Shown here: positions 16,243 to 59,100 of the stretch, piece by piece
How the letters are laid out: every line of letters starts with the position of its first letter
Numbering within the stretch: position 1 is the stretch's first letter
Assembly (NCBI GenBank): GCA_904063045.1
Contig: CAJFCJ010000003.1
Span: 3,086,504-3,150,503 of the forward strand
DNA: 64,000 nt
DNA from: Dimorphilus gyrociliatus
Taxonomy: Eukaryota; Animalia; Annelida
Direction of reading: 5' to 3'
Notes under the pieces: model-generated
What the model was told of the DNA's origin: nothing
What the model saw: only the letters and a program-made list of their open reading frames with translations
Databases searched by the model: none
Position numbers and translations under genes: made by a program

Positions 16243-19200
16243 TTAAACAACTTCTTTCCTTCTTGTTGTATCATGTCTAGTGGCGGTAGCCGTCCGTTCA
16301 CTTGGAGCTGTTGGAATTTTAGGAGCCCTACCCGCTTTTTCTGCCAACATCCGCCGTTCGGGTGTATAGTTTTCCCATAAACCCAACATGGCTTCTGCCG
16401 CCACCAGATCATCTACATTCTGAGAAATGAGCCTGATGATAAACATACCGTCTCGACGAAGGTAGAATTGCGTAAATTTTGTCAAAGCTGCCGTTTGTCT
16501 CTTGGTCGTTTCAAACGACCTTAATTGCTTCTTTACGTACCTAATTTGACTAGACCAATAAAGGGCGCGCATAACCCAGCGGGCAAAGTTGAAAGAAGTG
16601 GCTATAGACACGAAGACAAACCAGAACCAAATGAAGATAAATATCTTCTCGTTGAAGAGATTGACGGTCAGTACGCATTGGATAATGTATTCGTGTAGTC
16701 GATTATTACTACGGATTTTGAAATCGCATAGAGTAACACGAGGAAAACGCTCGCTAACCGTCCAATCTTCGCCCTGGATGAGTTTATTGAGTACGAAAAT
16801 ACCGTACCAGTGATAATTGATGCCTAAGAAGAAATCGAGGAGGAATAACTGGCCTATAGCGTTGAAAAGGTAGACGAATTTGACGACAAGATAGCTGAAG
16901 GTTAAGTAATTCCCGTAGAATCTACCTCCGACGAAACAACAATAGTTTGCCAATGCATGTTTCATCCTTACACAGCAGCCTGTTCTCAAGTCTCGCTGCT
17001 TCAGCAGATACCTGTGGGAGAAAGATTGTGCATTTCATATCTTATCAAAAATTTATAAGTGATCTCTCCTATTCGCTTTCACTTTACATTTTCCATCTTT
17101 ATATTCTACGTGGGGGAAATATTTTTGTCAGGGGCTTATTCCCATATCCTCCTATAGCTTTTATAATGGAAAGATAGTTTGACCAATTCCTTGTAAGATC
17201 GATTTAGCCCTTTTATCCAAAAATAATTCACTCAGAAAGCTTGCTAAACCCTTTAATTCTTAAGGGAATACAAGAAAACTGTTTCCGATTATCATATTTA
17301 AAAAAAAGAGTCAGATTAGACGAAAAGAAAATTAGTTTAAATAGCAGTTTTTTTTCTCTCAGTATGTGTCTCTCTCTCTCTCTCTCGCTCTATTTATGCA
17401 TATATATATATATATATATATATAAATATAAATACACTTTCCCTCATTCTGCTTCCATTAAATTGCTTAATAATAGAAAAGAAATACTAAATATTGTATA
17501 TATTAAATTTTCAAATAAAGAAAGTTAAGAAATTATTAGTTTGCAAACGATGAATATTAAATTATTTATCAATAAAAAACATTATAATTTAGGGGAACTT
17601 TTCATAAAATCAACCTCGGCAAATAGATCAAACAACTTGTTTATAGTATTCCAGCACGGACGTTGTGAATTATACATGCGAGAAGACTGTTATCGAAAGT
17701 GGGTTGAAATAATAAAGATTACATAAAACAGGATTTTGTCGTAAAGTGAACATACATAAAACTTTCTTTAGGACATTCATAATACTATATTTTGCAATAT
17801 TTTTCATCTATTTTTATATACTGGAAAACCTCTTCCATTCTATGACAAACATCGATTACTAAAACGCTAGTTATCAAATAAGACCTATGATTCATTTAGT
17901 TTCACGCTACATAGTAAGCAATCATATGACGTCACAAAGCACACAGTAATAAAGGCAGTTCTATTATTTTTGCTTTTGTTCAATCTCGTGTGTAATAATA
18001 CGACACACCGTAGTATATCAATATAATAAAAAACTTTGTTTTTCTAAATTTCATAAGATGGCGTTGTTATGCATTGTTTACAAGGAAAAAATTCACTTTT
18101 ATCGATATACTTAATTATTGTCTAGTTTATAATTTATGAAGCGAAAAGAAGGGAGAAAGAGAGAGAGAGAGAAAAAGAGATAGAGAGAGAGAGAGAGAGA
18201 GGAAAAGGGAGAACTAGAAAAACAGGATTTTAATTAACTCTTTCAAAAATAGAATTTAGAGAAAACATTAACAAGCAAGGGAATATACTCAATAATTATA
18301 TGACATATTTTATTTATATTATATATAAATAAGTAAGCTAAATAATATATAAATAAGAATATAGATATCTATATATATATAGGTCTCTTAATTCTTGTAT
18401 AATTACTACATTAAACATCTACTTAAACACAAAAAAGAACTAAGTAGAAAATATGGGGGCAATTTTGTAGTTATTTTTTTTTTACACAGTCATCAATTTT
18501 TAGAAAGAAAATCGTATTTATCGATCAAATCATATCCCACTGTTAGATGACTGATGGTAAAGTTGGAAGAAACAAAAAAAGAAAAAAAAAGAAAAGTGAA
18601 GGTCAGCATTCGCTGCTTATTGGACTGCTGAAGAGAAGTTGTTTCAGGAAAAGAGGGATGTGGTCGATCAATAACTTTGCTACCATCGTTTAAAAGGTAG
18701 ATAGATTTGGCAAGGGATATGAGTAACGACAAAGGAAAATTTACACCATTTATCCTCATAATATTTGCTGTCTGTTCTTCTTCCTTTGGCTGTATACTAT
18801 TGCAGAAATATCGTTTGAAATCTGATAGTAATTGAGTAAGATATTGAAGGATGCTGAGATGGATAAAAACACAAAATAATGATTTAATGTGTATATATCC
18901 ATTATACAGAATATTAAATGGGAGCTGTGTGTCAAAATGGTGTGACTAAAGTTATGAATATATGTCTATATGTGTCTATACAATAGTACATATATATATA
19001 TATATTTATACAGTATATATATACATGTACATATAAAGAAAATTATAACTACAATATATCATATGAACTAGTATATAGGCGGTATACAATGAAATTTGTT
19101 GATATCTACATAATTTATCTCAAGTAGTATAGATATTCATGTAAATGCACATATATAAATTTATACATATGTATATTTCTCTGTGTATATTTATTAGTAT

Positions 19201-20644
19201 ACATTTATAGATGAAAATTAATCCAAAGAACACAGGCCACATATGTATGTAATATGTACATTTTGTATTTGTACAAATATATAACAAGATATTGTCTATA
19301 GGCAACTTTTTATATAGCAAGATGACGCGATCGATCGATAATTTATCAACGTCATTTTATTTAGGCCTATTCCTGCCAAACTGTAGCAAAGCGCTCTGCT
19401 TGTAGGATGCTTAACTAGCAGATGGCACCTCAATATTCGACCAAACAGTTAATAAAATGAATTATTTTACCAAGATAATTCAATCTATTAGAATAAGTTA
19501 AATAAATTATTTGCTCAATTTTTATGTGCAAGCTTAATACTATTGACCAAATGGAGACTCATTAGTAAGAGAAAACAAGTGAGAAATCAGTAGCTTAGGT
19601 GTTAATACCAATATTACCGGAAGTAAGAATCCATAGTAAATATTTAACAATGTTAAAAATTGCTGGGGAAAATACTAGATAAAAAGGGTTAAATACTATT
19701 AATATCCGTCGTAAAAAATATATTTTAAGCCTTTACTATAAGCGTATTATGATATAGACCTTAACATTTTACATCTGACTCTTTGACATTTCGTTTACTA
19801 AATCTACATGGAATATTTTAAATTTAAAGGTAAATTTACCAAAAAATTTAACAAAGACAGAGGGCGTTGAAATCGATAAGTATCTTTAAAACCAAATTAT
19901 ATATATTTTTGGCATTTAGTTGTAGAAAGATGGCGAAGTAACTTTATAAAATATAAATAGAGTGACAAGTAAAAGTCTGAAAATGGGGAAATAAAAGTTG
20001 TACGACTTGTTTGCCTTTTTTTTCCTAAACAGTAATATGATGCAAATTGATTTGGAGAACTCTCATGGAAAAAAAAAGTGCGGTTTTGCGTCAATAATTC
20101 TACAGCTTAGTGATACTCATGCAGTAAAATATACTATACTAAATCGGTACCTGTCCATCTGGTTGACAATATATCTTAACGTCTTCTCTCTCATATCCGT
20201 ATGACTGGATCGTTGGCAAACCTTTGCAGCATCCATCATAGCGCCGACATCAATGCCAGCTCGTTTATTGAGAAAGCGCCAAAGAAGGCATGGAATGAAA
20301 TATACTGCTGCTTGAAAAAGGAGAACAAGGGGCACCCATTGATAATAGCTAACCCGTTTGATCCGAGCCTGTTCAGCTGGCCTTGGTATGTTTTTAGTTA
20401 TAGGTTGATAGTAGTTATTCGAAACCCAACAAATTGTATTCGCATAATCTCGATGCGAAGCTGTGAAATGTGCTGGACACCAGCAAGAAATCGGTTTTCC
20501 GACGAGTTGTTGGGTTGAGATGACGCAGGTGAAGAAGACTAGAAGTATAGTTGTGTATCGACGACTGAGCCGGTCGGCAAAATCGTCATCAGTCCGGATT
20601 TTTACCTCCTTAAAGGAGAGTAACGCCTTGAATAGACGATCCAT
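16243..20644 (-). CDS. inx: Innexin (invertebrate gap-junction protein), 420 aa, join(complement 20151..20644, 16243..17011)
   Basis: Innexin hallmarks in translation: DDDFADRLS, SCWCP and CW extracellular cysteines, YYQWV, FPRVTLCDF, QCVLTVNLFNEKIFIFIWFW. Donor GACAG|GTACCG at 20151/20150 and acceptor ttctcccacag|G at 17012/17011 are both phase 2, giving ...QMDR-YLLKQRDLRTGCC... in frame. Confidence 0.96.
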
Positions 20645-30389: not shown

Positions 30390-33300
30390 ATGCCGAACTT
30401 CCATCGGGTTATCCGTGCTAGCGAGAGAACTGACGAAGAGTTAGCAAAGGAGCCAGTAGATGATACGGGTATCACAAATGAAACCCCTAAAGAGAGTGGC
30501 AGTGGAAATGCCTGGGATACAACCAAGAAAGTGCTGGGTGAATTGCCTAGTACGTAAACAGATATTTTTTTTAGTTTATTAATAGAATATATCGATTTAA
30601 AATAACCTTCTATATTTCAGTACCGATATGGGCTAGTATTCTCATTGCCATCGTGGTTATTATTATTCTGCTAGCCATCTTGTTTTGCGTCTGTAAAAGA
30701 TGCTGCAGGAGGAAAAAGAAGGACAAGGGAGGAAAGAAGGGCATAAAAGGAGCCGTGGATTTAAAATCAGTTCAACTGCTGGGATCGAGCTATAAAGAAA
30801 AGGTTCAACCGGATATGGAAGAATTGGAAGTAAACATGGAAGATAATGAAGGCGCCGAAGAAGAAAAGGAAGAGGTTAATTTAGGAAAATTGCAGTTCTC
30901 GCTCGATTACGATTTTCAGAAGGGAGAAGTAAGTAAAAATAGCACAATAATTATATATAGTATATATACATATATATTTTCATGGTTAAAAAAACATTAA
31001 TTACTTCTGTAGCTGTCTGTCGGAGTCATGCAAGGAGCTGACTTACCAGGAATGGATATGAGTGGAACGTCTGATCCATATGTAAAAGTCTATCTATTGC
31101 CTGACAAAAAGAAGAAGTTTGAAACAAAGGTTCACAGAAAAACACTTAACCCAGTCTTCAACGAAACATTTACGTTCAAAGTTCCGTATGCCGAGATTGG
31201 GTCAAAAACATTAACCTTCGCTGTATACGATTTTGATCGTTTCTCCAAACACGATCAAATTGGTCAAGTTAAAGTTCCGTTGAATTCGGTAGATCTTGGT
31301 AAAGTTGTTGAAGAATGGAGAGATCTTACTTCGCCTGATACAGAATCTGAAAAGGTAAGGGAAAAACTTTTCTATTTTTTACATTTATTATTCTTCTTCT
31401 TCAATTTACTAGTGATTGAAACTTTTTCTTATTACCCGTTTTATCTTCTGCCCTATTCAAAAATAAAATATGGGCGATTATACAGATTTTCATTAAATAG
31501 GATTGATATTCCACTTGCAATAAAATATTTACTTGCAAAACTTATCATTAATTAAATAATCAAAGAGCAGGATAAGAAATAATGAGATTTTCTTGGAAAA
31601 AAACAGCATACGTAAGAGCATAATATCAGAATATATTTCTATAAATATATATATATATAAGAATATAGAGAGAGCAAGACAACGAGTGAGCGAAAGATAA
31701 AAGACAAAGTATATAAAATATTATATTGGAAATGAAGAAAACGATTAAATTAAAAAGAAAATGAATTATATTATATAAATAAATATTCTCTTTATCTGTA
31801 GAATCGCCTATAAAAGTTTTTTTTATAAAATTAACTGCAGTATCATCAGTGCATGAAATTTTATATAACTTTTCATATTTCAAAAAAAAAAAGACAAAAA
31901 AAAAAAGAATGAAAATATTTCACTTATCTTAATAACAAAAGAAAAGAAAGATATATTTATATATATTTATGTAAAATATATTTAACTTATTATATATAAT
32001 TAAAAAAAAAATAATTATTATAATTAAAAAAGAAAGAAAAAAATTGGCAAGCGATTTTTTTTACATTCTTAAACTTAGTTCGTGTTGCATATTGTTAACT
32101 CGGTGCCGTAAACGTTAATTGGTTTATTTCTCCCACATGGTAAGTAAAATATCCTCTGCACCCAAAAATCTCAAAGGATGAACTACAGACCTAATCAATC
32201 TACTGTTAATTTTCATTTCTATTTATGTTTCTAAACATATTGTAAAAGATAATATAATGAGAAAACAAAAAGAGATAGCAATCAAAATGATAAAAGAAAT
32301 GAGAGGATAAACGAATGCAATAATGACTAAGAACAATTACTTATTTATTCAATTGTGTTTATAAATCAGCGATAATTCAATTATTTATTTAATTAAAACA
32401 GGCAAATTAATTACAGCTTTGTTTTTATTACTAGCTTCAACTAGAGGATGAATGTATAGAGGGATAATTAATAAGCATAGACTTGAATATATAAAAGCTA
32501 CAAAGAATGAAATATATTAAAAAAATTGCCTATAAAGATATATTTTTATATCAACATGATAAAACTAAATAATAAAGTAATTGATTATTTCTGCATAGTT
32601 CATTCCTACATAAATCGGCAGTGGAACTGTGTGTAACATATAACAATATTAGGCTGTTATCTATTTGCGGCATTAGTAGCTTCAATATGCAAAAAAAAAA
32701 AAATATATATATAATTTAATAAATGGAGAGAATTCGCTTTTTTGTTTTCGTACTAAAGCTAAAAGTTTTCTTTTTTTGTTTATTTCTATCTTTATTTAGA
32801 ATAGAAATTTATTATTTGTTGTGTTTAAGAAGGCACCTTTTTTTTTTCTTTTCTCATTTTTGGAGGTTTTTTTTCTTCTTTTTAAAGCACACAATTGTTT
32901 TGCACGAGTTATTCAAAAAAAAAAGATATAACAATATATTTATAGAGCTAAATTGCATTCAATGTTTAAACATGAAAACTTTATAAAGAGAAAAATAGAA
33001 AAAAAAAGAGAGAAATATACGAAAAAATATAATGATGATGCTATCAAAGAAGAAACAAAAATAAAAGGATAATTAACTAATTAATCATAAATATTAATTA
33101 TTAACTCTGTTAATAGAATTTTATATTTTATACATGGTTTCTTTTTTGTTAACGTTATCATGATAAAAAAAAGAGAATTCTTAATTGGCACTAAATTAAT
33201 ATAGCATATAATTTAGCGCATGGTTAATAGCTGATAGCATTTTAGCTTTTACATTAAAAAGATATCATTTCTAATCAATCTGAATGATTTTTTGTTAACT

Positions 33301-34276
33301 CATTAACAGGAGAACAAACTTGGCGATATCTGCTTTTCACTACGTTACGTTCCAACGGCTGGAAAGTTGACAGTTGTCATTTTAGAAGCTAAAAATCTCA
33401 AGAAAATGGATGTTGGTGGCCTATCTGGTAAATTTTCTATATTTATAAACTTTGATATTCTTGCTATATTTATTCAAACCCAAATGGGACCAAATTTAAC
33501 GATTTATTCTATGCTATTAAAGATCCTTACGTCAAACTGTCGCTTATGATGAATGGAAAGAGAATTAAAAAGAAGAAGACGACCATTAAGAAATGCACAT
33601 TGAATCCTTACTATAATGAATCCTTCACTTTCGAAGTGCCATTCGAACAAATCCAGGTAAGATTTATAAATAGTATCTTTTTACTTCTATTATGAATCAT
33701 TAACTAGCTTCACTCTTAAGATGTGAGAGAATGATAGTAAACCTAGTATTTTTTGCATCTATTTATCAACCGAAGTACTGTGTACACTATATAAAATAAA
33801 GCCTGCAGTAATAAATATTGCTCTGAAAATAGAAATGATTAAATGTTTCAACACTTCCTATTTTTATATTGATGAGCTATTATTTAATATCTCCGAAAAC
33901 TAGTCCCAATTTTTTCGGTAATCTATAGCTAACCTTAAATAAAACGAGTAGGGCTTAGTGTATATAGATATATACTGCATGTATACCTAAATGATGTAAT
34001 GTAAAATAATAAGTATCAATACCAGTAGATGGCGCTATACAGCTTATCTGTTTATCATACTTATAGAACTCGTTCACATTGATTTTACAGAAAGTGACGC
34101 TTATCATTACGGTCGTTGATTACGATCGTATAGGAACGTCCGAACCAATCGGAAGGATTGTTTTAGGATGTACCGCAACTGGAGCTGAACTACGCCACTG
34201 GAGCGATATGTTAGCTAATCCTCGTCGACCTATTGCCCAATGGCATACTCTACAAGAGATGCCAGAAAAAAGTTAA
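30390..34276 (+). CDS. syt1: Synaptotagmin-1, 415 aa, join(30390..30549, 30621..30928, 31013..31354, 33310..33427, 33523..33656, 34091..34276)
   Basis: Luminal N-terminus with NET sequon, TM helix ([23 protein letters not shown]), basic juxtamembrane linker, C2A ([20 protein letters not shown]), C2B ([28 protein letters not shown]) and terminal [10 protein letters not shown]. All five introns are GT-AG with matching phases; exon lengths sum to 1248 nt. Confidence 0.97.
34022..34035 (+). promoter_or_regulatory. CTCF-consensus motif in syt1 intron 5
   Basis: CCAGTAGATGGCGC is a full match to the CTCF consensus CCASYAGRKGGCRS. Confidence 0.55.
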
Positions 34277-36379
34277 ATCTATTCCCAAAAGGGAATGAAG
34301 AAGTTAAAAAAAAAAAAAAACAAAGATTTAAAAAAAAACACATGCCTCTGCTGTCTCCCAGTTTCAAACAAGTTTTTTTCGGTGTGTCTAACATATATAT
34401 ATATATATATATTATACTTATACAAAAAAAGAGAGAAATATCAAAAGAAGGGAAACTGCACAATTGAAAAGAAAAAAAACTGATATTTTTTTTTTTTCAT
34501 AATTCTTCAAAAGGAAATCGTTGATTATTACAAACAAATGACAAGAAATACTAATATATATATATATATATATATATCTATATCTATATAAAAATTTAAT
34601 TGATTATTATTTATTTATTTAGTTATCTTATTTGTTTACTTATTCTAAGCAAATGATAATGTTTTGCGTTACAAATGTTCTTAATCGTAATTGAAACAGG
34701 AAGAATTATAGATATTAGGTTTAATTAAAAAATTGAGGAAAATGTTTAATGTTCAATCAAGAAAAAACAAATCAAATGCTCTAATTAAAGTTAATTTGAG
34801 TTAAAAAACAAAAAACTAATCTTAAAATAATTCTAATTTAAGGAAGAAAGAAAAACTGTATATTTTAAGATCAACAAAGACATTCTTGAGCAGATTTTTA
34901 TCAAAACAGTTTCCTAATTAGCTATTTCTCTCAATTATTAACCTAGTCCTTTTAATTCTATGTCTATAAATAGCATTCATTATGTATTTACATATATACA
35001 TATATATCTATATATTTATATGTGTATATTTCTATTTTTATATATACATATATATATATATCTATATATACATATATATGTTTATATATATATATATGTA
35101 TAAGTATGTATGTATATTACCGGATAAAAAGAAAAAATTACAAAAAAAAATACACTTGAGCAAACTCTATACAATAATAAAGGCCTACAGACGGTGATGT
35201 TGTAGTTGATTTGTTTCTTTGTTATTTTAAAATAACATTCCGTTCTAGTCCTGCACAATTGTTGTGTTCATACTTTTTTAACAAATGTGTCGTTGTGGTA
35301 ACTTATTAGGAGAGACGAGTCTTTGAAGACACGTATACTCTCCGATGTGCAGTGTTTTATGGTCACAGTAAAATATAAACAGTATACTCTCCTATATTCT
35401 CAATATATATCTCTACATATATATATATATATATATATTAATATTACATATATTGAATTATAATGTCTATTTTTTTTCAATGTATATGAGTTTGTCTCAA
35501 CAAACTTTATTCCGAATACAATTCAACGGGTTTGTCCATTCCGAAAAAAAACAGCTTTTCAACAGAAAAGATATTTAATTTCACTTGTCAATCCTGAAAT
35601 CTACAATCTTTTTTTATTTATTTATTCCACCAAAAACCTAATCAGAAATTTCTAAAAACAGGCTTACCTTACCTAAGAAAGAGAAAATACGGTTTTTAGT
35701 TGACATATTTGCATCACTCTTTTTTAATTTTGTCCAACTTATTTGAATAATATATTCAAATATTATCATAAAAAAGTAAGAGTGGCTTTTATCAGTTACA
35801 CTATCTTGTACGGGACTACTTATCTTACATTAAGGACAAGCGATATAACTGAAGCCAGATGATGTTTTGCATTTTACCTCAAACACGTGTGTTATAGAAG
35901 AACCTAGATGCTTATTAAAACACCTCTGGATTATAATTTTTGACGCCAAATTTAAATGATAAAATTTGATGAATCCCTACTTCATAGGCTATAAGAGATT
36001 GCAAAAGTTTATCAGTATGTCTAAATACTATCTGGGTTATAAGTTAGTTGTTTACTGTTTCTTACTATTTCATATCCCTACTTTCATAGTAGATAGGAAT
36101 AGATAAATAAAAGAAATAACTTCTTGGAATAACATATTTTCCAAGTCAAGTTTATTTACATCCTTACGTTTCAAACAACAAACTTTTGGCTTGAAAGGAG
36201 AACAGAAATCTTTTATATTAGAATCTCTAATTAATCGTTTTACTTTCTTTTCCGTCCTCTTTTTTTGCGTTCACACCTATACTTTCCATATAAATTTGTA
36301 CGGAAGTAGTCTAATTTTATTTAACTTTATTATTAGTTTGCCAATTATTAATATTAAATAAATCAAAATTCTTCTCCAA

Positions 36380-36494
36380 CTAATTAAACTAACTTCCGCC
36401 AAACTCAGCCAGTCACAACTTGATTAACTAGTCAAAAGAAACGCCCGCGTCTTACTAACGCATCACTTTCAGTCAGTTCAGATGACACTCGACT
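36380..36494 (+). promoter_or_regulatory. Promoter of the neuropeptide-like gene
   Basis: ACTTCCG ETS-type site (36392-98), GC-rich CGCCCGCG, overlapping TCAGTC/TCAGTT initiator-like motifs (36469-78) about 20 nt upstream of ATG 36495. Confidence 0.45.
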
Positions 36495-37935
36495 ATGAAA
36501 CGTTGTGTAATAACCCCCGTTTTATTTTTCATCATAGTATTGTCTCAATACGTTCGGATTGCGACAGGAACCCTGGAGATAAAATGGAATGGGTTTAATA
36601 ATCGTAATTTTATTGGTTTGGAGGATAGTGTAAGGGTGGTAAGTAAGTAAAACAAGAAATAAGTACTTATGTTTATATGTAATTATATAGTATTTTGTCT
36701 GTCTATCTATATATATATCTTAACGTATATAAATATATAGATATAAAAAACACGAGCATGTTATTTATTTACTTTTAACATGTAATTTTTTTAAGGAGGC
36801 TATGTCTTATTCATTAACCTTTTCTTTAGTTAGGAGGTTAATTAGATACAAATTTTAGTTACAAGAAGTCAACTGCAAATCTTAAGAGAACAAGTAAACT
36901 TAAGATATTAAAGAGATTTGCATAAATATGGTGAAAAACTAAATAGAGGAATTAAAAACAATAAAGTGTTACTTTACTTTTAAAATTATATTGTTATCCT
37001 CTTCTTTCTCTATAAAGAAAATAATTTTCATAAAATGATAGATAAAAACTAGTTAACTACATTAAATTTTCAATTGTAGTACAATAGCTAGTAGCTAACA
37101 GATCTTCAAAAATAACTTTTCCTACTTATACATTCTTTCCATCTTTTTCATCTATATTCATTCAACTATTCTCTTTTGTAATTCTAACAATAGTTAATAA
37201 ATTTTTACAATTATAGCAATTTATTGTTAGGGCTTTTATAACATACTATGCATAAAGATGAGGATGTTTTACGAAGGGAATTCTCTAAGGATACCTTATT
37301 TTGAGTTTTCATACAATTATAAAAATAAGTACTATATTATACTATATAATACTTCTAAATAGGTAAATTATATGAAGAATATATAGCGTATAATATGTAA
37401 AAGTATTCTGAATATATTAACCATATTAATTAAAAAGCTTAGACTTTCTTTTTTATATATATAACTGTAAAATACCTTTGAGTAATGTCAGACAAATTTG
37501 TTATTAATACATAATTAATATTAATGGTAAAGGTTTCATTAAATAAAGCATCATCTTGTTTTTAAAAGCTATACAATGTTTGTCAAAGTTATCATTTACA
37601 GTGTAACTGTAGAGACATAAATTTGTAGTAGATTAATAATACTAATAAGTTTACGAATATGTTAAATATACTATAAAAGAAAGTATATAATTGTATTATA
37701 ATTCTAATTATAAGAGTTGTCTCATACCGTAATTTCTTATTAAATGGAAAAATAACTATTAAGATTATTACAAGAAATAAACTTCTATATTAAATTCTTT
37801 CGTATTCTTTTTACGTTAGACGCCGCCTACAGAGATCCGCTAAGGCGTAGAAGAATATGGAAAAAGCAAGCTCAACAAATGAAAGAAATGTGTATTTGGA
37901 AAATATGCCTGCCTAATGGACGAAGGTTTCTGTAA
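36495..37935 (+). CDS. Putative neuropeptide precursor (~87 aa) with CIWKIC core; best model join(36495..36642, 37820..37935)
   Basis: Exon 1: MKRCVITPVLFFIIVLSQYVRIATG (signal-peptide-like) then TLEIKWNGFNNRNFIGLEDSVRVV ending at GTAAGT donors. Last exon after pyrimidine tract ttctttttacgttag: AAYRDPLRRRRIWKKQAQQMKEMCIWKICLPNGRRFL*. Junction phase is uncertain (see findings). Confidence 0.72.
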
Positions 37936-39370
37936 AAGAAAGCGTAGGTAGTTTATTAGTTATGCTAATTAGTTATTTCATTTAAACTTAGTCATCTTCT
38001 AATTTTAAAGTAAGATAACATGATAAATAAACGATTAAAACTTAGTAAATGAAAGTAATTGAATATATTCTACGTAGCCAGCTTTTATGTGCTAGAAAAT
38101 GCAAGTTTTGTCATTTCTCCCAGATTACGTGGACGATATCTAAAGAAAAAGTAAATAAAACAACTCTGAAATTGAAATCAAAATCGAAAATGAAATTGAA
38201 GACGCCGTCGCCTTTTGAATATTTCTCTTTTTCTCCAAAAATATAATACAAATATACATGAAATAAAATGAAATATAACTGTCGTATTGTAATAATTAAA
38301 TAAAACTACTATATTTATAGTGTATCTTCATTCATAAGCTCTTTCATTGGCTCTTTCTTTCTCTCTTTATTTACTTTCATCTTTTGTCCTTTTTATACAT
38401 ATATATTTGTTTATTATAAATGTACAAAATGAGTGTAGTAGGCTTAATTTTTATTTATCACACCATATGTTTATACTAAATTATTCAATATGAATCAAGA
38501 TAATGATAATAATTTTGGCCTATATTTAATCATAGTTCAGTTGTTTTTATTTGCTAGTCTTGTATATTTTCCTAAGAGATTCATGGTAATGAATAAAAGA
38601 GCTTGTGTGTACGTTTATCTAAATAACTTCAAACATTCTACATAGAAACTTATATAGTAATAAATTATAAATGGATTGTGTACACAGTTTTTATACTTCA
38701 TTATATTCTACATGAAAATATACTGAGACGTAATGATAGTTTCCCTCATCAACAATAGATGGCGGTAAGAAGAAAATGCAATTTTTAGCAAGCCTTTATT
38801 GTGTATACTTGAAACGGTATAAATAAATACAATGTAATATATTGTATACATGTATACTCTGTATAATAGGTACTAAATAATATATTAAGATTGCATAAGT
38901 ACGTCCGCATATAGATATTTATAGTCGTTTTATACAGCAAACACTGCAACGGAAAAATCAAGAAAGAGAGATCAAATTGAAAATTTATCTTCATAAAGGA
39001 ATCCATTAGACAGTTGAAATTTCTAAAAGAAAAATATTAAGCGTGCTATGTTATGTAAAATTTACTAAATTTATTGTCACATATAGAGCTCTGAAAATAA
39101 TTAGAAAAAAGATGGATAGGAAGTTGCTTAAAAGCCTATTCCGAAATGATTCACATATTTTTTATATAGAAAATGCAACCACTGACAAAAAAGAATAGGA
39201 AATCTATATGAAATAACTTTCTTGCAAGTTAATCTAACATGTCAAAGGTTAATTAAAACACTTAATATGCTTTACGTTCATTTGCATACAATCATAGGTT
39301 ATATTATATTCCCTATTTCATATGTATATATATATATCTATATATATATTAATATATGCTTCCCTATTAG

Positions 39371-40866: not shown

Positions 40867-43800
40867 TTAGGTGGTACAATTTCTATGTCTCCGGCTCCGA
40901 ACATGCTGGCTCATATCATTTTCGTTCGAAAACGAAGCTTTACAGGATGGACAGTAAAATTGACCGCTAGGTAATTTGTAGTTTGCAGTCGATGAATCAC
41001 GTTTATCGTTAGTTGATAGTTTTAAAATAGGATCGATATCTGTTAAGCGAAAGAGACAAGAAATAGAAAAAAAAGCAATTAAGACCAGTAAAAATCGTTT
41101 AGTTAATTTATTCTCGACATACTTACCAACTTTTTCAGTTTTTTGAAGAGATCGAACAATTTTTTTCTGTTCTTCCACAGCCTGCAAATGACTTTGTAAA
41201 CGGACGTGAAATCGAACTGCAGTATCATCATTCAATCGGACGTCGCAGACGATGCAAGCAAACTTTGCACTTTAAAAGAAGAAAAGAGCATTATAAAAGA
41301 CTGTATAAGCAATCAACTTGTTGAATAAAAGCCATAAGAATATGATCAAGTTACAAGTTGAGGGGTAAAAAGGGCAATAAAAACAAAACTACGCTATACA
41401 GGAGCAATTAGGATGCAACCGTAAGCATAATAGACACTTCACTCTCGTCTCAAAGTGCTATGATTGTACTGTAAATGAAATATATTAGAAATAGGTTTAG
41501 GCTGTAGAAAGAAATGATAGATTGGTAGAAAGGGAAAGGGAGGTAAAGAACGACAAAGAGAAGAAAAATAAAAGATAAAGTAGAAATGTATACACACGCA
41601 CATATACATTATATATTATATTAATATATATATGTAGAGAGAGAGTATATATAGAGTATAATTTAAAGGATTCTATAAGACATGCATGCTTATGAACTAA
41701 GTTAGCATTGTTTATTCCCTTCCCATTGAATCTAGCAAGAAGAAACATAGAAAGAAAAGGACTAGGGATTCAGGCGATATTCGAAAGAATAATTGATTTC
41801 AAACACTTTCTCGCCTTAATCAATATTCATTAGCATGATGAAAAAAACTGATCAGTTGATTCCAATTTTTTTCTCTAATGTATAGGGTAGTTTTTTATAT
41901 TGAAATATAAGAAATTCATAAAAAATAAACCAGATTTAAAGCTATTAACATATAGTATCTAAGTCTTTTTCAGTTTTCAAAAGGAAAACATACTTACACT
42001 TATTAATTAGCATTATATTTTGAATTAACTTACTCGCATATACATTTCTTTTGACTGTCTGTTTTCCTTCTTACTTTTCCTTTGGTTCTTTTTGCGTGAT
42101 TTTTACCACCGTAGTGTTGTTGAGCTTGTTTTGTTGAATTGAACGAGACATCACATACGGCACAATATACGTCCGCACTTGGCGTCTTTTCCTGGGGTTT
42201 TTCTTCATTCTATTTGAAAGAGAAAGAGAAGGCCGGATTAAGCGAACGTTTCTATAATCCTCTTATATATCACGACTCAACACAAAGACGTCCCACTCGT
42301 GACCGTCACTTTAGAAGCTTTATTGAGGAAAATGTCATACTGCTTAAAAATCTCAATACTCTTTTTTTCCCGAGATGATTAACTTAGCGAGAAATAGTCT
42401 TTGAAATACTAACTGAGCAGAAATCATCTTTTGTTCTCTCCCTTAAATCGAATCATATGAAAGGAATCAGGTCACGAAAACAAACTATACCCTAACAAAT
42501 TTCCACTGATAGTCTAAAAATTTGTCTATGTACCTATCAGATATTAATACAAACTCTGTAAATATTAAATATTGCTGATACAAAGTTACATAGAGAAACC
42601 AGAGAAATAGATATATAATACATCTACTAAAATAAAAGAGAAAAATGGAATAGAATAAAGAAAGAAGAGGAAACGAATGAAAAATACATGACATTCGTTT
42701 GCTCGTGCTTCTGGATGTAATGGAAATTTTATGCATTAGAGGAAGAATGTTTATTTTATTTGTTTCATGATATATATTTAAGCTCACTCCTCCCTTTTTT
42801 ATTATAATCATTAATAAATATTTCGTAATTTTAGATGGTAATTTTTACTAATTCATTTATTTCACTTAATAACGATTATAGTAATTGGTCATAAACTTTT
42901 ATGTTTTTCAAAAAGATGTGTCTAACAGTGCATGAAACATTCACTAATCGTTTGGAAGCCTTAGTCATAGAAGACAAAGATACAATGCTATAAGAAGATT
43001 CTCTTTCGTTTCTTCCCCTCTTTCCGTTCTCCGAAGACAACTACATAATTTAAAACATTTATATTTCTCTATCGTTTACTTGTAAAAGATGACAACCAGC
43101 TGAACAGATTAAACTTTGTAAGAGTCAACTAGAACAATACTAGGTTGGTATGGCAACAGCTTATACACATTTAATATGCAGGATGATCGATAATTGAAAA
43201 CACGGCAGCACTGAAATGTCTTTTTCTGCTCGACCTCATCTTCCCATTAGCCTCTGGCTAAATAATAGTTTCTTGAAGCTATTAAATAGAATTCTCTTTC
43301 TTAAAACAAGCTGTTCAATATAAGCTTTGCATTTTGTTTATTAAATATATACTTGTCGCTAAATTATTGGACAATGCTAATGGCAACGAAGGCGTAAAAA
43401 ATCCTGTTCAATAAACTCGTAAATAATTCAAACGATTCAGCGTCATCGAAGCAAAGCGTTTAACATCAGGAGTAAGAATGATCTTCATTCTATTCTTAGT
43501 AGTTAATTTCTCTTCAAATGTCGACAGTTGGCTAACGGTAACACTCAACCAGACTAAATACTGTATTGGCAGTCGGAATTTAATCAGGCCTCGTTATACG
43601 TCTACAAAGCTCCTCGAATCGGAATGGACGCTTTGGATAGGCGCTTCTCAACAAGCCTCCTTACACAAGAAAGCATTCGATGGCAATGAACTTTCATATA
43701 TGAAACGACAAAATATATTTTCTGCTGACAGCGATTTATCTTATTGTGTACCACTTGAAATTATTGACAGGACTGTGTCAGTAAAAGCTAGGAATCTAAA

Positions 43801-45269
43801 CAATATATCCGTTGTGCTCAAAGGGGAAAATTTAGATACCGGACTCTGTCAAGATTTTTACGTTTATAATCGTTTATCAAGTAGAATCGAAGAGGGAAGA
43901 GAGATAACAACTAATAAACTCTGCAGAAATACTAACTACCACTTAAAAAATGACTTGATTACTTGTCAATATAAATGTACCGGTTATATAGATTCTCTTA
44001 GGTTTAACACTGTTTTTGAACCTGCTGTAGCTTCTAAATTAAGATTATGTAAAATCTCTGTTGAGTAGTTTTACTTTATACTGTATAATATTGTTTGGCG
44101 AAATAAGAATGATAGAAAGAAGACATAAATGTATGTATACTGTTTCTTTATCTAATATAGTAATGGTTTTTGAAGTGATTCATCCTAATTGAGTGTCTTC
44201 GAAAAAATCCCTGGAAATGCGTCTAAAATGAGGTGAGAGAGCTACCTGTTCCGGTTTGATATTGCTACTAATTTAATTGTTTGACAATCAAGTTCCGGGT
44301 TATTTAAGCAAACAATACAGATGCTATAAAAATTATAAATCATTCATGCTAATGGATTTTTTTCAAGTTTCGCCGATTAGTTTGAGTAATTTATAAAGAA
44401 TCGGTAAAAGTACCGCAAATTGACCACGAGCTAGGAAGTTTTCGGTTAACGATTCTACCATTTGTCTTCTTTAATGTTTCACGCATCTGTGCTTGTCGAT
44501 AACTTCTTTCTCACTTGTAAAACTTTTCAGTAAATATATACATAGATTTTCTTTCCTTCCTTCCCTTTTTAAGTCTGTATTTCGAAATATCCTTCCGCTT
44601 TTAATTTTCATATCAAAGGAAGTATCATGTGATTACATTTCCCTTTGCATTTTTCATTTTCTCTCTATCAGTTTTGACTTTGAATATGTTTCATGATTAG
44701 GACTCTGCCATTTAGACTAAGTATATACTAATATATATATATATATATATATATTTCTTTCTTCTCTTTACACCTTAATTTTAACTTTTTATATTAAATT
44801 CCTTTTATTATTATTAAAGAATACAATTTATAAAAAACAGTAAATAAATGAAAAAATTTAGACAAATTACTGTCAGTAAGAATAATTAGACGAGAATTTT
44901 TGTTTTTCTTGTATTTAGCAACTTGTTTTTTTTGTCAGTCTCATCTCTAGTTTCACTAGTTGAAAGATTACAAGACTTTATATTAGTCTAAACACCTTTT
45001 CAACCTACTTTGTTATTCTGTTTGTCAAGAAGACCAAATCGATATTTGAACAAATTTATTCGCTTTTATGCCTGGTGTATTTAACAGATAGAGTTAATGG
45101 GTTCAGAATCCCCTGATATGTAATATCAAGGGAATAATGAGGCTTAATCGAGGTTACTTTTCGAATATTCTAAGAAATAAGCTAATCATTCTGTTTAACA
45201 GCGGATAAAAATCTTCGGATTTAGAATGTATACTTTTCTACTATCTTCAGCATTAAAAGAAGCTTCATT

Positions 45270-56197: not shown

Positions 56198-59100
56198 TTA
56201 CCACGGCCTCCAAGGTTTATCTTCTAACCTCACATCGTTATCTAATCTAAAGCGTTTAACTGGTGACGACTCGCCGTCGGAAGAGAGTGCTGAAAAAGGT
56301 CGTCTGCAGTTAGTTGTTTCCTCTTTATTGTTATTAAGATCTAAGGTGGGAGTTGCTAAAACTGGTAATTGCATTACAATTGTTCTCTGAGCAGAGGGAG
56401 GCATATTAATCATAACGTAATTGGTTTGTTGCTCTTTACGAGGGGTACTTTCTTCTCCCGGTCGTCTAGCAGCCATGCAATTGCTAAGATGCTCTAATAA
56501 TCTGGATCTTATTTCAACATCAACTGAATCGATATTTGCTAAATATCTCGAAACTTCGCTAGTGCATTCATTAAAGCCAGCGTAGTACTTATTAAGAACA
56601 GCTGGATCTGTTGTGGCAATGGCTGAAAGGAAAAAAAGGAAAATTAAAGAAAGAAAATTGAACAATGCTATTTTTCAATTTCAATAGATGTTTACATAAG
56701 GGGAACTGCGATAAATTATTCGTTAAACTTTACCAAACTTAAACCTGTTGAATAGTTGCCAATTTTTATTTATTATTAACAATTTCTTATGTGTATGCAG
56801 TGCGTTATTATGCGTATATATTTATATATACTATATATGATTTGTACATGAAAAAAAAACAAATTTGCACTTTTACTATATTGATTTTATATATAACAAT
56901 ATATAAGGATTTATTTACACTTACCCCTTTATATAAAAAATACCAAGGTGTCTTAAAAAAATGTTAATGTTTTCTTAAATATATAAAAGTCAAGTGTTTG
57001 AGACCGGAAAAGTGTATATTCTTTAAGGGAAGAAGAAAATAACCCCCTTAGGCTATGAAATTACCAACGATGATTTACCTCTATTGGCAATTGACAAAAT
57101 CAGCTACTTGACGTCATCCAAAATGGCTATTGAACAATAGGTGAATATTTTATGGGTCGTAAATTGAATTGTTTAATGCTTTTTAGAGTGCTTCCAAAAA
57201 GATAAAGCATCGATAGTGTGAAAAAACGTACCTGAAAATTGCTACCTTCGTATTCAAGTTAAACGTTTTTATACTAAGTGAATTAAAAATAGTTAGAAGA
57301 TATCTGTCTATTCCAAACTTTATCGCCTTTCGTTATTATTCCTATTGTTCTAGTTAAACATCAGTGTTTTTTTTTTAAATTTACCTGAAAATTGTTGTCG
57401 TTGAATTTGTCTTAGATGTCTAACCGTATATTCTAAAATATCAGCCTTCTCCATTTTATTATGCCTGGCACCCTATTAAAAGAAAAATTATGCAATTAGA
57501 GTGTACTATTAGAATGTTAGTTCCTTAAAAGCCGTTTTAACAGCGCGAACTAACAAGCATCTAGTATTGAAATTTCTGTCTATTTATCATTGTAAACGTA
57601 AAGAAATATATATAGATTCCTAGCATTATTATTTATTGAATTACATTAGCCGTATGAAAGACGGAAATAATTAACATAGTTCCTTTTTTTTGACAACACA
57701 CACATATAAAAAAAAGTCTCTTCAATTATTATCTTATAGCTTCATCTTATTATTTAATCTTTTTTTTATAGGCTGATAAAAAGTTTCTTTACCACAGGAA
57801 GTCGTTTTTTTTTTAACACAAATTAGAAGTATTAAATTTCCACTCGGAGAGAAGTTTTTTAAAGACAAAATTTCAAACACCACTACTAATTACTCAGCTT
57901 GAAGCTGCTCCTTTCCCATGATTTTACCCTATAATCAACTGTTTAAACGATGCCGCCAATGCGATCCGATAACTCCTAACGAGTACTTATACTTGAACAA
58001 AAACAATGAATGAATCAAGAAACGAACTTTCAAAATAGAATTTAAATAGAATGATAAAATAAGGAATACGTTTTTTATTTAATTTAATAACATTTCTATT
58101 TTTCTTTTGCACGTGTTTAACTTTTACTTTTTATCTATAATTTTTTTTTAACACCTATAAATAGATAGAGCATTGAAATTTCTCACAATTAAACTATGGT
58201 AAAAGTGTGAACAGAGGTGAACAATTAATTCGTAACTAAACAAAAGACTGTTAAAAATCTGGTCAATGTTTTTACCCTTTTAAATTATTTAATTTTCAAC
58301 TATCTAATTATGACTAGAATGAGCTAAGAGAGTCAAAAGTTCACTTTTATTTGAACGGAAAAAGTAAGGGGAGACAGACAGATAGACAGACAAATTTAGT
58401 GAGAGGAAGAAGTTTTTAACACTTATTTAAATAGAAAAATTTAACTTACTTCTTTTTTCATAGTATCTAATAATAAACCCTTCAACTCGCAAAGACAAGC
58501 ATTAATTCTTGCTCGCCTCTTTTTTTCCATTATAGGCTTGCTGCTCTGTTACAGAAATAAATACATATATATGTATATATATAAATTTATATATATATAT
58601 AGATAGATAGATAGATAGATATATAAATATATAGATATATCAAGAAGAAAGATAGACAAAGAAAGAAAGAGAAAGCGAGAGAGAGAGAGAGAAACTACAG
58701 ATGATTAGGAAATTGGGCAGTTTCATGAAAAAAGAGCGTGGGAAAAAAAGAGAAAATATTTTTTTGTAATAGACTTTTATATTTTGAAATGAAACGTTGC
58801 ATGAACACGTAATTACTGAGGCCGCTTACTCAATAAGGAATTTTCTTGAATATGTTCAACGACGCGAAATAATGTGATTTAAGTCTCTTATATGTTATAT
58901 ACAGTAAGCATTCAAATAGCTATTTAACACTCTATAGCTATAAAGAGTCCAAAAGGTTCATCAATCGTCTATATATTTTCAGCTCAAGAATATCATATTC
59001 GTTCGAAAAAGATTCAGTAGCAACTGATAACGCTAAATATAGATAATGAAATGTATATTTTTATACGAAGAGCTTTGTCATAATTGCAGCGTGATTATTC

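Follow-up and report, generated by a model that had tools for sequence, protein, structure and literature searches.

The stretch of Dimorphilus gyrociliatus DNA analysed here (NCBI GenBank assembly GCA_904063045.1, contig CAJFCJ010000003.1, positions 3,086,504 to 3,150,503 of the forward strand; 64,000 nucleotides (nt), referred to as the window) carries on its plus strand a locus that is very probably a genuine, expressed three-exon gene, with two coding exons and one exon in the 3' untranslated region (3'UTR), encoding an 87-residue preproneuropeptide of the SSRP-like (somatostatin/urotensin-II-like) type. Established in this analysis are the sequence features of the gene, two splice junctions, the occurrence of the gene in RNA-derived contigs, exon-1 conservation in a relative and the similarity of the encoded peptide to published ones. 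The gene model comprises the following features, numbered from the first nucleotide of the window:

36000 to 36042, plus strand: 3' end of an upstream non-coding exon, spliced to an acceptor at 36538 inside exon 1
36311 to 36494, plus strand: 5' flank and 5'UTR, aligned to contigs of a related taxon, with conservation climbing towards the ATG
36495 to 36642, plus strand: coding exon 1, with the ATG, a signal peptide of approximately residues 1-25 (36495-36569) and the N-terminal proregion, ending in phase 1
36643 to 37819, plus strand: intron 1, 1177 nt, GTAAGT...TTAG, phase 1, inside the proregion, with an RNA-derived joint
37820 to 37943, plus strand: exon 2, with the remaining proregion, the processing sites, the mature peptide, the stop codon (37933-37935) and the first 8 nt of the 3'UTR
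37843 to 37866, plus strand: processing region RRRR-IW-KK, with RRRR at 37843-37854 and KK at 37861-37866, from translation
37867 to 37917, plus strand: predicted mature peptide QAQQMKEMCIWKICLPN, with a Cys9-Cys14 ring (37891-37908) and an IWK core
37918 to 37926, plus strand: Gly-Arg-Arg, putative amidation donor and dibasic site, followed by Phe-Leu-stop, from translation
37944 to 38123, plus strand: intron 2, 180 nt, GT..AG, wholly within the 3'UTR and starting 8 nt past the stop codon
38124 to 38249, plus strand: exon 3, non-coding 3'UTR, with the contig end at 38249 and an AATAAA at 38262

Translation of the spliced coding sequence of 264 nt gave a precursor that starts with an MKR n-region and a 13-residue hydrophobic core, VITPVLFFIIVLS, followed by A-T-G at positions -3/-1; the Kyte-Doolittle mean over nine residues reached 3.3 in the core, and the call of a signal peptide is a heuristic one. 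The C-terminal part reads RRRR-IW-KK-QAQQMKEMCIWKICLPN-G-RR-FL-stop, so that the peptide ends five residues ahead of the stop codon, while intron 1 ends seven codons upstream of RRRR. The first-pass annotation of this DNA, made from the sequence, had proposed a signal-like N-terminus, RRRR, KK, the peptide and G-RR in this order, and on reading and translation all of these elements were found where it had placed them. Two tandem GTAAGT donors, 4 nt apart, are located at 36639 and 36643. The frame fits the acceptor TTAG|A at 37819/37820 only with donor 36643, which is also the donor used in the RNA contig, and the codon at the junction of exons 1 and 2 (a|ac) encodes Asn.

RNA evidence came from a public run, X1 (2017), in which 32% of the words sampled from the locus were present and whose contigs were placed on 36000-38600. 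A 355-nt contig of this run with a depth of 49 corresponded, with 0 mismatches, to 36538-36642, 37820-37943 and 38124-38249. It contains the joint 36642>37820 (skipping 1177 nt, GT..AG), which is the in-frame junction expected from the sequence, as well as the joint 37943>38124 (skipping 180 nt, GT..AG). Run X1 includes spliced RNA of the peptide gene, and the interior of intron 1 was represented by patchy contigs only (depth 0-6). A spliced transcript in which the exon for CIWKIC follows the signal-peptide exon in frame was what the first-pass annotation had made its proposal depend on, and the 36642>37820 joint in the depth-49 contig largely provides it. Moreover, the pattern C.WK.C occurred a single time when the 64-kb window was translated in six frames; 200 first-order Markov simulations of the window gave an expectation of 0.035 for it, and the composite pattern of a dibasic site, the ring and G[KR][KR] was found in 0/200 simulations. 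Together, the splice evidence and the Markov simulations led to the rejection of a chance open reading frame (ORF).

Conservation was assessed with four genomic contigs of approximately 20% GC that carry a 51-residue exon-1 ORF with 86% identity to the precursor (Logan contigs L001-L004 of SRR23372229, SRR31984831, SRR23372231 and SRR23372216) and evidently derive from a close relative of D. gyrociliatus. These contigs aligned to 36311-36661 of the window at 84.5% nucleotide identity, and no alignment was found upstream of 36311 or in intron 1. Within exon 1, eight synonymous and six non-synonymous codon changes were counted, and the ATG at 36495, the internal AG and the tandem donor were all kept in the relative. 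A search of the four contigs in all frames for C.WK.C gave no match, the contigs stopping within the intron and ahead of exon 2. The 90 nt around the ATG (36431-36520) had 27-29/30 matches per 30-nt bin, which is above the coding average, and this block is probably the core promoter and 5'UTR. The block contains GAAACGCCCGCGTC, a TACTAAC resembling a branch point, with TTTCAG behind it, and repeats of an initiator (Inr)-like TCAGT (36470-36481); a conserved TAATTA lies further out in the 5' flank at approximately 36383.

The SSRP-like family has been defined by a small precursor with a C-terminal peptide, a loop of four residues between the cysteines, WK preceded by I, V or L, and extensions at both the N- and the C-terminus of the peptide (Koch et al., 2022; PMC9048919). 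The Dimorphilus precursor is small, with 87 residues and an N-terminus that resembles a signal peptide by the heuristic mentioned above. It carries one copy of the peptide, at its C-terminus and behind basic sites (RRRR, KK), and this peptide has exactly four residues within the Cys loop (C-IWKI-C) and an aliphatic residue ahead of WK (IWK). Positions C9, W11, K12 and C14 are invariant when the peptide is compared with Ct-SSRPL1 of Capitella teleta, apUII' of Aplysia and Cr-SSRPL1 of Conus. Aplysia apUII' is SGGMSLCLWKVCPAAPWLIS, described as a urotensin-II-like peptide (Romanova et al., 2012; PMC3493602). Ct-SSRPL1 (pQASSGAQICIWKVCPPTPW, Cys9-Cys14) was predicted, synthesised and found to activate the Capitella G-protein-coupled receptor (GPCR) Ct-SSTL1 with a half-maximal effective concentration (EC50) of 13 nM (Koch et al., 2022; PMC9048919). 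The N-terminal extension of the Dimorphilus peptide has eight residues, as in Ct-SSRPL1, and the tail consists of LPN only (one Pro, no Trp) before Gly-Arg-Arg. Peptide-level and architectural similarity thus support that the gene belongs to the protostome SSRP-like family. The urotensin-II/somatostatin-like identity suggested in the first-pass annotation agrees with apUII', with the annelid and mollusc SSRP-like peptides and with the alignment to Ct-SSRPL1. Its description of the family as poorly characterised, on the other hand, no longer holds for annelids, since 19 annelid SSRP-like sequences have been published, including three genes from D. gyrociliatus, two of which have no intron within the peptide (Koch et al., 2022; PMC9048919).

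Several observations weigh against this interpretation of the locus, some of them concerning the transcript. The locus was found in one run only (X1), the type of which is not on record, and no single contig or read links the ATG and the signal peptide to exon 2. The ATG at 36495 and the part of the signal peptide encoded by 36495-36537 are found on a separate, unspliced contig (36109-36567) with a depth of 12.6. Since the junction contig starts at 36538, the link from the ATG to the peptide is a 30-nt overlap of contigs and not one molecule. A second isoform, with the joint 36042>36538 (GT..AG), is represented by a 656-nt contig at a depth of 20 compared to 12.6 for the ATG-bearing contig. 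In addition, an out-of-frame ATG is present at 36482, 13 nt upstream of the start codon. This ATG opens a 38-codon ORF (36482-36598) that overlaps exon 1, and its start context is weak, with C at -3, where the ATG at 36495 has A. The ATG at 36482 is kept in the relative, but truncation of the overlapping ORF there speaks in favour of the peptide gene.

Other observations of this kind concern the peptide and its family. Cleavage at KK is less frequent than at KR or RR. The Pro-rich, Trp-containing C-terminal tail typical of the SSRP-like family is absent, and the intron structure of the family is not reproduced, the sole coding intron being of phase 1 and located in the proregion, with none in the peptide. 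According to Koch et al. (2022; PMC9048919), the C-terminal tail "commonly" has one Trp along with several Pro, which is therefore not a strict criterion. The same authors reported a phase-0 proregion intron in all SSRP-like genes that they examined, but they also called the gene structure variable, and the D. gyrociliatus genes deviate in that 2/3 have no second intron (PMC9048919). The intron mismatch weakens the claim to a canonical gene structure, not family membership. Finally, no homologue of exon 2 was found by word search, phmmer, Pfam or PDB sequence search. The word-based search with the exon-2 ORF gave no match, and neither did the Pfam search, which included the somatostatin and urotensin models, or the PDB sequence search. 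Searching 1.84 billion representatives with the exon-2 peptide, phmmer returned P0002 and P0004, which are translated tandem repeats with inflated scores and not homologues, and a third match, P0003 (1273 residues), with no reported matched stretch, which was not counted as a homologue. As the searches lend no support for exon 2, the family assignment is based on the 17-residue alignment and on motif rules. For peptides of this size, an absence of search statistics is usual.

For the short form of the product, we propose that the signal peptide would direct the precursor into the secretory pathway, where prohormone convertases would cleave at RRRR/KK and at the C-terminal RR and a carboxypeptidase would remove the basic residues. 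The exposed Gly would then give rise to the C-terminal amide, Gln at the N-terminus would cyclise to pyroglutamate (pGlu) and a disulfide would form between Cys9 and Cys14. The end product would be pGlu-AQQMKEMCIWKICLPN-amide, with a six-residue ring and an I-W-K pharmacophore, and its target is presumably a Ct-SSTL1-type GPCR related to the somatostatin/urotensin receptors. Signal-peptide cleavage, the basic site that is used, pGlu formation, amidation, the disulfide, the receptor and neuronal expression are all predicted properties; a function of Gly-Arg-Arg as amidation and cleavage signal would follow from general rules of prohormone processing, and use of the KK site is predicted from the alignment to Ct-SSRPL1. 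The Gln-Ala start and the N-terminal length equal to that of Ct-SSRPL1 support cleavage at KK and a pGlu start, both of which the first-pass annotation had predicted. This annotation had also considered that the amidated tail may be lineage-specific and had regarded the receptor as an unknown. The short tail and the amidation signal do look atypical for the family, and Koch et al. (2022; PMC9048919) make no mention of amidation in their main text. The type of receptor is known through Ct-SSTL1, from Capitella and not from D. gyrociliatus. The predicted [M+H]+ values are 2043.964 for the pGlu/amide/disulfide form, 2060.990 for the form retaining Gln and 2616.343 for a long form starting after RRRR, calculated with a routine that reproduced the masses of two published peptides.

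This long form is the basis for the alternative that, within the same gene and family, cleavage takes place at RRRR only and releases a 21-residue IWKKQAQQMKEMCIWKICLPN-amide with no pGlu, or that both forms coexist. RRRR is a furin/prohormone convertase-type site and stronger than KK. A coexistence of long and short products also has a precedent in Aplysia, which makes both apUII forms (PMC3493602). However, the 17-residue peptide starting with Gln matches the receptor-active Ct-SSRPL1 at its N-terminus, both in the spacing to the ring and in the first two residues, and a Gln right after a dibasic site is a classic pGlu N-terminus. We therefore consider this alternative possible, although rather unlikely, and retain the 17-residue pGlu peptide as the predicted product.

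A further alternative sees in the locus a paralogue that is decaying or poorly productive. It would be transcribed in part by read-through from a synaptotagmin gene, and most of its mature transcripts would use the acceptor at 36538 and yield no secreted peptide. A synaptotagmin-type gene is present on the plus strand at 30653-34276, with C2A exons in 30653-31555 and C2B exons near 33367, 33546 and 34079. Its coding end (34274-76) lies 2.2 kb upstream of the peptide gene on the same strand, and the 656-nt isoform contig reaches more than 580 nt upstream of 36000, towards the synaptotagmin 3' end. The upstream exon may stem from synaptotagmin read-through, or it may be an alternative leader that is non-coding. 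With its joint to 36538, the start codon is lost together with most of the signal peptide. In the frame of the upstream exon that continues into the peptide, a stop lies at 35991 without any ATG behind it, a second (phase-0) frame ends on the TAA at 36040-42, and the third frame stops at 36596-98. Without an ATG reading into the peptide frame, the 36042>36538 isoform cannot yield a secreted peptide. Besides the depth of this ATG-skipping joint (20, against 12.6 for the ATG-bearing contig) and the synaptotagmin coding end at 34276, the out-of-frame ATG at 36482, the atypical tail and the intron phase are in line with a paralogue in decay.

In contrast, the ORF of the peptide gene is intact and all processing signals are present. 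The relative shows strong conservation of exon 1, with its ATG and donor, and of the 60 nt ahead of the ATG, with an excess of synonymous changes, whereas the region of the upstream exon is not conserved. Furthermore, the depth past 36538 (49) exceeds the sum of the two paths feeding into it (approximately 33), which would fit an additional start at approximately 36470; the mean contig depths and the conserved block are faint hints that the main transcription start may lie near the Inr-like TCAGT at this position. A decaying paralogue is thus improbable. That the peptide belongs to another family of ring peptides is hardly credible: the CIWKIC-LPN-amide arrangement shares the topology of the nonapeptide hormones of the vasopressin/oxytocin type, which have a six-residue ring and a three-residue amidated tail with Pro, but the peptide stands at the C-terminus of the precursor with an N-terminal extension of eight residues, neither a neurophysin domain nor a Pfam match is present, the ring is without the conserved Asn5, protostome allatostatin-C loops have six residues between the cysteines and not four (PMC9048919), and the WK core fits the SSRP-like family. 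Both types had been tried as candidates and were rejected, the allatostatin-C type on loop size and the vasopressin/oxytocin type because its nonapeptide directly follows the signal peptide and is accompanied by neurophysin, an arrangement not seen here and with 0 Pfam matches.

Regarding its annotation status, the peptide gene has no entry among the public D. gyrociliatus proteins. A word-indexed search with the 87-residue precursor found no identical or paralogous public protein, the sole match being the exon-1 ORF of the relative described above. Two innexin exons are located on the minus strand of the window at 16243-16989 and 20117-20644, and 16243-16986 is 100% identical to NCBI DgyrCDS2610; this match confirms D. 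gyrociliatus as the organism and indicates that its public proteins were within the searched collection. The string CIWKIC had no match in the literature text searched. The chances are about even that the locus is not among the three published D. gyrociliatus genes and is instead a further, divergent paralogue, the first with an amidated, Trp-less tail and a phase-1 proregion intron. Should this be true, it would suggest that somatostatin/urotensin-like signalling underwent a lineage-specific expansion in this miniaturised annelid, in which a separate receptor might be involved. It would also increase the copy number in the species and provide an amidated variant for comparing receptor selectivity with that of the Pro/Trp-tailed peptides. 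In either case, a transcript-supported, unannotated gene joins the neuropeptide set of a model miniature annelid, and the public protein set of D. gyrociliatus misses small two-exon prohormones. Since the family as such, its occurrence in D. gyrociliatus and a receptor from an annelid have already been published, the picture of somatostatin/urotensin evolution is unchanged. The gene is real, but fairly ordinary.

Elsewhere in the window, an ORF on the minus strand (56198-56665) ends in WRPW and resembles a C-terminal exon from a bHLH repressor of the hairy/E(spl) type. On the plus strand, 43478-44068 is an intronless ORF of 196 residues with a signal-like N-terminus, and an exact look-up of its product in the public collection returned no record.

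Compared to known systems, the Dimorphilus peptide is identical to Ct-SSRPL1 of C. teleta at 8/17 positions (47%), namely Gln1, Ala2, Cys9, Ile10, Trp11, Lys12, Cys14 and Pro16. Both are single C-terminal peptides of small secreted precursors, with eight residues before the ring, an aliphatic residue ahead of the second Cys and a Pro two residues past the ring. They differ in the tail, which in Ct-SSRPL1 is PPTPW with a free acid, whereas the Dimorphilus peptide has LPN followed by Gly-Arg-Arg and a two-residue postpeptide. The genes differ as well, the canonical annelid gene having a phase-0 intron and a phase-1 intron within the peptide, in contrast to the phase-1 proregion intron and the 3'UTR intron of the Dimorphilus gene. 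With two of the three published D. gyrociliatus SSRP-like genes, the gene shares the absence of an intron in the peptide, but for the published genes a phase-0 proregion intron was stated, as opposed to phase 1 here.

The Aplysia peptides apUII and apUII' and the SSRP-like peptide of Conus share with the Dimorphilus peptide the C-[LI]-W-K-[VI]-C ring, which in Aplysia was confirmed by mass spectrometry, as well as the C-terminal position and dibasic processing. Outside the ring, however, identity is 27%, and in the mollusc peptides the N-terminus is rich in Gly/Ser and the tail, PAAPWL[IV]S, is not amidated. Vertebrate urotensin II and URP have the same four residues between the cysteines, and together with somatostatin they share the W-K pharmacophore and the position at the C-terminus of the precursor. 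In the vertebrate peptides, an aromatic residue precedes WK (FWK) where the Dimorphilus peptide has IWK, and the latter adds N- and C-terminal extensions and an amidation signal to the arrangement found in these vertebrate peptides, for which orthology with the protostome peptides was proposed by Koch et al. (PMC9048919).

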